A stretch of DNA of 64,000 nt, taken from Pocillopora damicornis. Its lineage: Eukaryota. How positions within the stretch are numbered: the first letter of the stretch is position 1; the number at the start of each line of letters is the position of its first letter. This document shows positions 5,972 through 8,454 of the stretch, one piece after another. The position numbers and the translations under genes are program-made. The stretch is from the NCBI RefSeq assembly GCF_003704095.1, contig NW_020845812.1, forward strand, positions 1,054,001 through 1,118,000. Reading direction: 5' to 3'. A model generated the notes under the pieces. That model worked only from the letters and a program-made list of their open reading frames with translations. It was not told where the DNA came from and ran no database searches.

Positions 5972-8454
5972 TGACACGAGCAGTGCTAAAAAGGCACGCC
6001 GCTCTGATTCGTGGTGTCACAAAGCACCAGGACTGTCCGTGAGTCAAAGAAAGCTTTGCTTCAGAGTGCTTGGACTCGAGACTGCAATAAAGAAAGGGAT
6101 CGAGAGAGGATTATCAGAATGCGAGCGAGAATTTCAGTGGAGTAGGTGGAATTGTAGTGCGCTTGTAAATAAAAGTCTTTTGGAACGAGCACCAGGTGAG
6201 TGCGTCAGCCATGCTTTGTTTTAAATCAACATGACTTTGTTTTTCTTAACTCCAACATCTGTTATCATTGGCGTATTTACGTTTCTTTATGGTTGTAGGG
6301 AAAGTCCAAACTGACAGATGTAAAAAGGTTAAGGATCAAATGGAGTCTTAATGGCCACAGAAATGTGATTAAACATCAAAATTGCACACAAAGGGCAGTT
6401 TTAATCACCCCAGTTTCCACACTGCTTGTTATTCCTCTGTTGAGGACGTACAGAATGTGCGGAAAGTGCTATCAAAGAGTCATGTTTTATTTCAAGTTAA
6501 CTTTTGTTCCATTGGCAAGGCTCCATGCTGACAAAATAACGTCGAACAGCGAGTACTTCCTGCTCTCCTGAGTTGTGGGCACGAAATCAAAATCGTCCCC
6601 GCTTGAAGCTAATTGAAAGTTTTTGGCGTATATCGAAATTAACACAACGGTACCCCGACCAGTTTAAAGGTTACCATTTAAATATTATTTAAGCCCGATC
6701 CGGAGTGATTCATAAAAAGAAGCTGTTGGTTTACTTCGGCGACCTTTGTAATTGCATTTTTTTGGCCCTATTTCTGTCAGTTTTTGTTCTGACTCTGATC
6801 TGTAATTGCATGCGCCGATAGGCCTCTTTTAGTCATCTCGCTCAGCTTCTGCAGTGAGTGTCTATCTTTGTGTCCTATCTGTTCCTGCTCTTGAGTGTTC
6901 CTTAGTTCACGTTGTTTATGAAGAAATTCGTCTTTGGTGTCCTCATCTGCAGTATTTTTCATTACGCGTCTTTACGTGTCCGCTTTTAATTTGTTATGCT
7001 AACATCAAAAACACAAAACTACTTTCATCTATACACATACGCACTAATACAAAACATGAGGGTAAACGTGCCTATTAACGTCTGGGTATGTGATATTTTT
7101 ACATTCTTAGTACTCCAGGTTTTCTTCTTATTCCTGAATAAGGTGGAATTTTTTCTTATAACGTTTAATTATCTCACTTTCCAGCTGGGACAAGAGAGGC
7201 GGCGTTTACAACTGCATTGCTATCAGCGTCAATAGCCTACAGTGTAACAAAGGCCTGCACAGCGAAAAACGTCACGGAATGCCGCTGCGAGGGAATCAGA
7301 CGTCCCAGGTACGGGCAGACCTGGAAACGGAAAGGTTGTAGTGCAAATGCTCACTTTGGAACTTACTCATCTGAACGTTTTATGCTGAATGACAGGAGAA
7401 ATAAAAGCGCTATTGATACACTTGTCATGAAGCACAATATCAGAGTTGGACTTCAGGTGAATACAGTAGGATATTCAAGTTGTTATCCTTTTACTTCATT
7501 TGTGAGCTTTTCCATCCTTGCATTTTATGAAATAGTTTAAAGATAATTTTATGGTTAGATAGTAGGGTCCCCATCTGTCACAAACCGTACTGTCTTTAAT
7601 TTTCGGCGTGAGTTTTCAGAAAATCGGTCTTGCACCTTCTTTTATAGGAAATTGACACTCCCAGGAGAGAAACACGAGTTTTCAACGATGGGGTTTTACT
7701 CCAGATATAAAATACATAGTAGGATGCGAGAGAATATAACAGTTTACAGTTTCTTGTAGGATGTAATTTTATATTTCTACTATTTCATATCAGGGTGGGG
7801 ATGTGGGGGGCGTAAGAGCTTAGCTACCCCTTTCGTTTAATTGAGCAATTGTAGGGGTCACTTGGCACTGTCAGCCCCAAATGATTCGCACTTGTGCGGC
7901 AGCAAGATCAAGATTCAATTTAATGGTGTATTATACCAAAGCATGATTCTAATTACCTGTGAAACATTTTTCAGGTTCTACAAGAGAATCGAGTGGCAAA
8001 ATGCACAGTGGGAAAAACTGGGAGAGTTAAGTCTTGCCATCTAACTTTACCACCACTCCACAAAATCAGCCGAATCATTAAGGGAAAGTATCACTTGGCC
8101 ACAAGGGTTACTGCGCACAAACGAGGAAAGAACAATTCACCCTTTCTGCGAACCATTGAGCGGTACCGCGACAGACCAAATGGAAAGAGACCAAGGAAAT
8201 CATCTCTGGTTTACATCCGTTACTCTCCCACCTACTGCTATCGGCAGAATGAATACGGCATTCCAGGCACGCGTGGCCGCCGCTGCCAATTGAACTCTCT
8301 TAAAGAAGGTGACTGCACCTTGATGTGCTGTGGTCGGGGCTACAAACGGGAGGCAAAACTTCAGAAGAGATTTTGTGACTGTAAAACGAGTGTTGATAAG
8401 CCATGCAGTTGTAAAGTATGCACAGATGTGATTATGGAAAATAAGTGCATGTAA
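5972..8454 (+). CDS. Wnt: Atypical Wnt family ligand; exons 5972-6195, 7185-7456, 7975-8454 (signal-peptide exon 1 not resolved)
   Basis: Spliced translation gives C..PGL...QRKLC, EC...F...RWNCS, GTREAAF..A..SA, AC..CxC, GCS.N, HN..VG, SPTYC, GTRGRRC, CCGRGY and the C-terminal Cys ladder. GT-AG introns: 6196 GTGAGT to ..ttccag 7184 (phase 1), 7457 GTGAAT to ..tttcag 7974 (phase 0); phase-2 acceptor at 5971 matches Wnt intron phases. AATAAA at 8588. Subfamily not assignable. Confidence 0.92.

Follow-up and report, generated by a model that had tools for sequence, protein, structure and literature searches.

The stony coral Pocillopora damicornis carries, in the stretch of 64,000 nucleotides analysed here (NW_020845812.1, positions 1,054,001-1,118,000 of the forward strand; hereafter the window, in which positions are counted from the first letter), a gene for a Wnt-fold protein in which neither of the motifs through which Wnts contact the Frizzled receptor, i.e. 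the thumb and the index finger, has kept its canonical form; the gene is nevertheless expressed and kept by selection. The palmitoleate carried by the thumb and the hydrophobic tip of the finger are held to be needed by nearly all Wnts for export and Frizzled binding, and Drosophila WntD is the sole textbook exception. The role of the finger motif F-x-W-C-C at site 2 of the Frizzled cysteine-rich domain (CRD) is known from the XWnt8-Fz8 structure 4f0a. The gene had been pointed out in an earlier reading of the window made from its letters alone (the sequence-only reading). We lean towards the view that it encodes a functional secreted protein of the Wnt fold, which arose by duplication of Wnt7 in or before the ancestor of the stony corals and acts in a non-canonical manner.

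When positions 4500-9500 of the window were read and the exons translated, the gene was found to consist of four exons on the + strand (Table 1), which encode a product of 340 amino acids (aa) with the Wnt fold, and all three of its introns are bounded by GT..AG. Exon 1 finishes in phase 2 (GG/T) and codes for a putative hydrophobic signal peptide of 16 residues. The Pfam wnt profile (PF00110) matches exons 2, 3 and 4 with 39.5, 73 and 101 bits, respectively (cut-off 20.3), and jointly these three exons span positions 2-304 of the 305 in the profile. The sequence-only reading had placed the gene at 5972-8454, with exons 2-4 open and provided with canonical splice sites, which is borne out by the translation, the AG/GT boundaries and the RNA joints; it had, however, missed the exon for the signal peptide (ATG 4803 to 4849).

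The evidence for transcription comes from the contigs of four polyadenylated (polyA) RNA libraries, each from a different study, which were aligned to 4600-9500. The splice joints 6195/7185 and 7456/7975 were present in all four runs, all of them GT..AG, and the joint 4849/5972 was seen in two runs as well as in the contigs L036 and L037. Over the exons, the contig depth was 12-20 in one run and 45-92 in each of the other three, while that over the introns was about 3-9. L036 and L037 are intron-less contigs carrying the database protein P0152 (340 aa), and match the window with 97.5-100% identity in four blocks that agree with the exon boundaries. P0152 is identical to the conceptual spliced product except for Leu3Pro, and was used as its stand-in in all full-length comparisons; its cluster at 90% identity contains 90 member sequences. 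A T/C polymorphism was observed at 4810, which makes the third residue of the signal peptide either Leu or Pro, and was found in one of the two RNA runs covering it and in P0152. Transcripts of the gene occur in adult-colony RNA libraries from several studies.

The thumb of the encoded protein contains 10 residues between its outer cysteines, compared with 13 in canonical Wnts, and is thus 3 residues shorter than those of human Wnt7a and of the anthozoan Wnt7 and Wnt16. It also lacks the inner Cys pair and the canonical His, although a His codon follows at 8038-8040. In the finger of the Pocillopora protein, F-x-W-C-C is replaced by T-S-V-D-K at unchanged length, so that the F, the W and the vicinal CC are all gone. 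Furthermore, the W-x-W-G-G-C of hairpin 1 is altered to W-K-R-K-G-C. All three changes had been read from the letters alone, i.e. the loss of the inner Cys pair and of the His together with a 3-residue deletion at 8002-8037, K-T-S-V-D-K-P-C of unaltered length at 8383-8406, and WKRKGCSAN in place of WxWGGCSDN, and the alignments confirmed each of them. In a survey that covered the whole genome (234 Mb in 4393 contigs), all 18 other Wnt last exons were found to keep a four-Cys thumb of the form C-x-C-[HTN]-G-x-[ST]-x-x-C, which is CHGxSGSC in most of them, and the same 18 retain a finger with the aromatic-x-W-C-C motif. Since every one of these paralogs retains the canonical motifs, the change is specific to this gene and is not due to chance.

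The same remodelling was found in the orthologs of the gene. When exon 4 was searched with phmmer against 1.84 billion representative sequences, four full-length matches of 207-262 bits and a partial fragment of the same clade (P0005, 85 bits) were returned, and the next matches beyond the clade were ordinary Wnts with 84 bits and 33% identity. The orthologs include those of Pocillopora meandrina (CAH3148137.1), Orbicella faveolata (XP_020629388.1, "Wnt-7b-like"), Oculina patagonica and Desmophyllum pertusum, and further ones were found in Porites harrisoni, Montipora capricornis, M. foliosa ("Wnt-7a-like") and five Acropora species, along with many transcript contigs that carry no species name. 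Full-length open frames with the same remodelling are thus present in at least seven stony-coral genera on both deep branches of Scleractinia; the clade has a support of 100/100, and its inner branching largely parts the robust-clade genera from the complex-clade ones. All 16 thumb variants of the clade have 10 residues between the outer cysteines and follow the pattern C-x-x-G-x-[T/S/R/A]-[G/E]-x-x-K-[S/A]-C, and none of the more than 20 finger variants contains the F, the W or a vicinal C-C, polar residues having replaced F-x-W-C-C in all orthologs. No ortholog with an intact CHGxSGSC or FxWCC was found among the stony-coral members of the clade that were compared.

The ratio of non-synonymous to synonymous substitution rates (dN/dS), estimated pairwise by counting among five full-length coding sequences from different genera, was 0.09-0.19, although these values are rough because dS is saturated (1-2 or more) between genera; Acropora and Montipora gave 0.19. 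A maximum-likelihood estimate of 0.88 for one pair (dS 0.29) was discarded as an optimisation failure, counting giving 0.11 for it (dS 1.98). An unsaturated comparison was provided by L045, a close pocilloporid relative with 79-82% identity over exons 3 and 4 and a dS of 0.34-0.37. For this pair, dN/dS is 0.27 in exon 4 and 0.31 in exon 3, and over 248 codons there are 53.7 non-synonymous changes in 576 sites versus 48.3 synonymous changes in 168 sites (Fisher p = 3e-9). Exon 4 precedes exon 3 in L045, which is a Logan contig, and this order is probably an artefact of the assembly graph. The constraint seen in these ratios seems less tight than is usual for developmental ligands.

The stem of the clade is 1.7-2.1 changes per site long, compared with 0.02-0.4 for its inner branches, as would be expected if the gene had changed in a burst and had then been conserved. 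Within the clade, the mean pairwise identity is 0.67 over the whole protein, but only 0.54 at the thumb tip and 0.32 at the finger tip, the highest values being those of the N-terminal helices (0.78) and of the last strand (0.77). By these identities, constraint has moved off the former Frizzled contacts, and the fact that the tips are the least conserved parts argues against their being new specific binding sites. The sequence-only reading had seen in the gene repurposing rather than decay, and had left this view to be checked against transcripts, orthologs and dN/dS. All three agree with it: spliced polyA mRNA was found in four studies, the remodelled motifs are conserved in all orthologs with no intact one among them, and the ratios of 0.09-0.19, or 0.27-0.31 where unsaturated, are not near 1 and point to purifying selection.

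A conserved set of 22-24 cysteines is a criterion of the Wnt family. According to the alignment, the coral protein keeps 20 of the 24 canonical cysteines, the absent ones being the inner pair of the thumb and the vicinal pair of the finger, and has gained one at a canonical Val position, which gives the mature protein 21 Cys, an odd number. The claim that cysteines had been lost in pairs is therefore right for the two missing pairs, but had overlooked the conserved new Cys and the odd total. Two readings of the finger are possible. In one of them, the new Cys325 is unpaired and lies exposed close to the tip of the finger; in the other, the cysteine ladder of the finger is re-registered to C-x-C...C-x-C, and Cys330 is then the free residue. 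In Montipora, the next-to-last canonical Cys is missing (K-V-R versus K-V-C), so that its total is 20 and Cys330 is absent there. The mature proteins of the clade have a net charge of +34 to +43 and an isoelectric point of about 10, which is roughly double the charge of the canonical Wnts compared (+14 to +21). An AlphaFold2 model with a predicted local distance difference test (pLDDT) score of 90.4 forms both the thumb and the finger hairpins as strands, and Foldseek matches it to Wnt7a, Wnt3 and XWnt8 (E = 1e-24 to 1e-18; template modelling (TM) score 0.7-0.86), the best structural matches being human Wnt7a and Wnt3 (TM 0.76-0.86). That the scaffold was kept, as had been claimed from the letters, is in accord with the Pfam match over each of the coding exons 2-4 and with the predicted two-domain Wnt fold.

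Several observations point to Wnt7 as the source of the gene. Human Wnt7a is the best sequence match in the PDB (176 bits versus 145 for Wnt3), Nematostella Wnt-7b is the best database match outside the clade, and exon 3 shares the Wnt7-type signatures E-A-A-F-T, G-C-S-V/A-N and [KR]-H-N. In a tree of exon 3, the clade groups with the Wnt7 of Nematostella and Actinia at a support of 95/86 and, one step further out, with the Wnt7 of the coral itself at 90/91, although a Wnt16 grouping is likewise not rejected there. The tree of the C-terminal part is poorly resolved, with few named subfamilies: a constraint to Wnt7 costs 0.6 units of log likelihood (p value of the approximately unbiased test, p-AU, 0.47), and one to Wnt16 costs 6.3 units (p-AU 0.24) and is not rejected. 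Both trees contain named reference Wnts for a few subfamilies only. On these sequence grounds, a Wnt7 origin of the coral clade is favoured. As a canonical Wnt7 has been kept in the same genome, on contig C3923, the gene studied here is an extra paralog.

In comparison with the Wnt7 subfamily (human WNT7A, PDB 8tzo; Nematostella Wnt-7b; the Wnt7 on C3923), which is its best match in both sequence and structure, the coral gene has identical exon phases and an identical four-exon layout. On the other hand, the identity of the proteins is only about 30-35%, and the coral protein differs by a thumb 3 residues shorter without C-x-C-H and the inner disulfide, a finger without F-x-W-C-C, an altered W-x-W-G-G-C, one extra Cys, about twice the net charge, and a separate locus beside the canonical Wnt7. 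At 260-288 kb of C3923 (L006, L011, L012, L014, L024 and L030), two mirrored Wnt genes were observed, of which the one on the + strand matches Wnt7 best and the one on the - strand has no clear subfamily. Each of the two seems to have a single exon 2 and a single exon 3, followed by two last exons that are alternatives to each other, and the Nematostella Wnt-7b isoforms X4 and X8 differ in their last exon only; alternative C-terminal domains may thus be an old feature of anthozoan Wnt7.

The acyl-acceptor site calls for separate consideration. It had been claimed that the acceptor Ser is gone, and a Ser is indeed absent, but the site is not empty: both HMMER (with human Wnt7a) and MAFFT (with the anthozoan Wnt7) align Thr196 with the acylated Ser, and the AlphaFold model puts this residue halfway along the loop (194-198) that forms the tip of the predicted thumb hairpin. 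Most genera of the clade have T or S at the aligned site, but Acropora and Montipora have Arg, and the close pocilloporid relative and an Oculina-like form have Ala. A Thr alone need not prevent acylation, since canonical Wnt8-like paralogs in the genome carry it within an otherwise normal CHGVTGSC. The Ser that canonical Wnts need has been described as lying at the tip of a hairpin which is stabilised by disulfides and enters Porcupine (bioRxiv 10.1101/2021.07.19.452875). As the aligned site varies between T, S, R and A, the conserved function of the clade seems not to need the lipid, and we think it likely, judging from the sequences, that the Pocillopora protein is unlipidated.

In the history that we favour, Wnt7 was most likely duplicated in or before the ancestor of the stony corals, and a burst of change on the stem would have shortened the thumb hairpin and removed its inner disulfide and His, made the hydrophobic F-x-W-C-C tip polar, changed W-x-W-G-G-C, added one Cys and roughly doubled the net positive charge, with purifying selection afterwards. 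The resulting protein would be unable to pinch the Frizzled CRD in the canonical two-site manner. Its conserved function would be independent of palmitoleate, and therefore its export should not need Wntless. Of the two properties for which the sequence-only reading had named the gene a candidate, freedom from the lipid is likely, and independence of Frizzled is a conjecture. The protein would act not via the tips but via parts that have stayed conserved, namely the core of helices and the C-terminal domain at its base, and would be soluble yet bound to polyanions (heparan sulfate or an acidic matrix), either as a ligand or as a modulator of Wnt signalling.

A number of points weigh against this reading. 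The acylation, secretion route and receptor binding of the coral Wnt are all matters that we infer from its sequence. Thr196, lying at the hairpin tip of the model, could still be acylated through its hydroxyl, and S or T has been kept at this site in most orthologs. The intergenus dN/dS ratios suffer from the saturation described above, and the low conservation of the tips could equally reflect species-specific co-evolution with a partner. In addition, neither tree rejects Wnt16 as the nearest relative. Finally, the restriction to stony corals depends on a search in which no clade member outside this order was found, in a database that is poor in non-scleractinian hexacoral genomes.

The first alternative is that the protein is still a lipidated Wnt: Porcupine would acylate Thr196 (Ser in some species), Wntless would export the product, and Frizzled would be contacted at site 1 only, a co-receptor perhaps taking the place of site 2. 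We consider this unlikely, although the alignment of Thr196, which is central in the predicted loop, with the acyl-Ser speaks for it, as does the tip G-x-[S/T]-G retained in most genera, and the CHGVTGSC of the canonical paralogs makes a Thr acceptor plausible in corals. Vertebrate Wnt7 can also signal via Gpr124 and Reck when its finger contact is weakened. It is difficult, however, to reconcile a conserved acylation with the Arg of Acropora and Montipora and the Ala of the close pocilloporid relative and the Oculina-like form, and the very hairpin that enters Porcupine has lost its His, its inner disulfide and 3 of its residues. Moreover, the residue preceding the acceptor is Lys, Asn or Thr, and not a hydrophobic one, and the acceptor Ser of canonical Wnts has been described as essential (bioRxiv 10.1101/2021.07.19.452875).

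The second alternative, which appears to us quite unlikely, is that the protein is a secreted antagonist or decoy, which would keep the Wnt surfaces for partners shared with other Wnts (LRP5/6-type co-receptors, glypicans or heparan sulfate, and secreted Wnt binders) and would damp or shape canonical Wnt signalling with no activation of Frizzled. Such a role would be consistent with a conserved fold and a core surface that is conserved for the most part, next to Frizzled-contact tips that have both been lost and are under relaxed constraint, with a very high positive charge suited to polyanion binding, and with transcription in adult colonies. However, the W-x-W-G-G-C of hairpin 1 is altered too, and we know of no settled LRP5/6-binding surface for Wnt7-type ligands.

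A more specific form of the non-canonical reading goes further, and to this we likewise give only a small chance. Here the stony corals would have evolved a lipid-free, strongly cationic signal derived from Wnt7, whose partner is not a Frizzled CRD but the acidic extracellular or skeletal matrix, heparan sulfate, a module of the Reck and adhesion-GPCR (G-protein-coupled receptor) type, or the syntenic rhodopsin-type GPCR. The conserved unpaired finger Cys may then serve for dimerisation or for attachment to the partner, covalent in either case. In Pocillopora acuta, the leading transcripts of the aboral (skeleton) side include one annotated "Wnt-7a" (PMC13581030), which may or may not stem from the gene studied here. 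Because of this transcript, with the same reservation, and because the gene was found only in a skeleton-building order, the coral Wnt could be tied to calcifying tissue.

The last alternative, that the gene is a decaying Wnt7 duplicate whose open frame was retained by chance, is hardly credible, for although the very long stem (1.7-2.1 changes per site), the odd cysteine number and an unsaturated dN/dS of 0.27-0.31, which seems higher than is usual for developmental ligands, would suit it, the gene has full-length frames in at least seven genera spanning the deepest stony-coral split, conserves 20 canonical Cys and the new one, and has a fold predicted with high confidence, and the pseudogene reading was rejected on a dN/dS far below 1 (p = 3e-9) and an mRNA spliced and polyadenylated in four studies.

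The coordinates of the gene, its motifs and the other features are listed in Table 1. In the window, 13 open frames of at least 250 aa were seen between 854 and 59578, most of which match rhodopsin-type GPCRs. The Wnt ortholog of Porites (locus L041) is also flanked by rhodopsin-type GPCR genes, and two GPCRs of Porites harrisoni are orthologous to GPCRs of the window, with the same place and orientation and with 62.6% and 57% identity. This arrangement is conserved microsynteny, and is no evidence of a ligand-receptor pair.

Table 1. Coordinates of the coral Wnt gene, its remodelled motifs, neighbouring receptor genes and the fingerless Wnt8-derived genes (window positions unless a locus is named; UTR, untranslated region; CDS, coding sequence)
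Feature	Position	Strand	Remarks
Exon 1 (5'UTR and CDS from ATG 4803)	4658..4849	+	RNA contig starts at 4658-4680
Exon 2	5972..6195	+	N-terminal helices of the Wnt fold, Cys 1-4; best-conserved part within the clade
Exon 3	7185..7456	+	Core of the Wnt N-terminal domain, Cys 5-8; Wnt7-type signatures AFT, GCS-x-N, [KR]HN
Hairpin-1 motif W-K-R-K-G-C-S-A-N	7322..7348	+	Replaces W-x-W-G-G-C-S-D/V-N
Exon 4, coding part (stop 8452-8454)	7975..8454	+	Thumb, basic linker, C-terminal finger domain
Remodelled thumb (hairpin 2) C-T-V-G-K-T-G-R-V-K-S-C	8002..8037	+	Alignments and clade comparison
Thr196 codon, opposite the palmitoleoylated Ser of canonical Wnts	8017..8019	+	Predicted hairpin loop (194-198), at the tip
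Remodelled index finger (hairpin 3) C-D-C-K-T-S-V-D-K-P-C-S-C-K-V-C	8374..8421	+	Alignments
New Cys325 at the canonical Val position	8404..8406	+	Found in every ortholog
3'UTR, unbroken from exon 4	8455..9454 (at least)	+	RNA contigs, to 9404 and 9454
Rhodopsin-type GPCR, intronless, tail to tail with the Wnt gene	9640..10635 (open frame 9643-10650)	-	Porites harrisoni ortholog, 62.6% identity
GPCR with position kept beside the Porites harrisoni Wnt ortholog	22589-23737	+	Synteny
Wnt8-derived fingerless genes on contig C738	L031:2540-4352, L032:2348-4223, L033:2057-3947, L034:2918-3502		

Among other unusual Wnts, Drosophila WntD is the nearest functional analogy. As cited in the review PMC10112924, Ching et al. 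(2008) found it to be non-lipidated and secreted with neither Porcupine nor Wntless, and the review describes it as the one analysed Wnt without a lipid. Like the coral protein, WntD has the Wnt fold but no canonical acylation motif in its thumb, and is thus a model for lipid-independent secretion. The two are not orthologous, however: WntD, of the Wnt8/D group, is the weakest Wnt match in the PDB (E = 1e-9 over 76 residues), while the coral clade sits with Wnt7. The loss in corals is independent. The absence of the lipid has been demonstrated for WntD, whereas for the coral protein it is a prediction, and the coral protein has, in addition, lost the finger motif of site 2.

A further group of genes was observed in the Pocillopora genome itself, on contig C738, where at least four tandem genes derived from Wnt8, with open exons, lie at about 115-184 kb and lack the thumb motif and the finger hairpin. 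They are like the gene studied here in being lineage-specific Wnt-fold genes without either Frizzled-contact motif, but differ from it in their origin from a Wnt8 cluster, with an L-C-x-x-C signature, and in the loss of the whole finger hairpin. As their database relatives are only Pocillopora-like (99% and 66% identity), they seem to be far younger and narrower in distribution. Another sequence, P0006 (692 aa, from an unknown animal), is a tandem double Wnt with a shortened thumb C-R-C-H-G-F-K-G-C that has no Ser and with W-C-C kept; from its sequence, it is possibly another non-acylated Wnt.

No published description of the altered motifs of the coral Wnt was found in a literature search that included the accession number, and the public gene models carry the automatic names "Wnt-7b-like", "Wnt-7a-like" and "Wnt7p". 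The coral gene would be a second and independent exception among the Wnts, in which the canonical form of both contacts has been lost and which is yet selected and expressed. As such, it offers a natural experiment on what the Wnt fold is capable of without the thumb lipid and the finger tip, and enlarges the small number of stony-coral innovations by a secreted signal specific to this order. Furthermore, the automatic "Wnt-7b-like" names that appear in coral expression studies may hide a quite different biochemistry.

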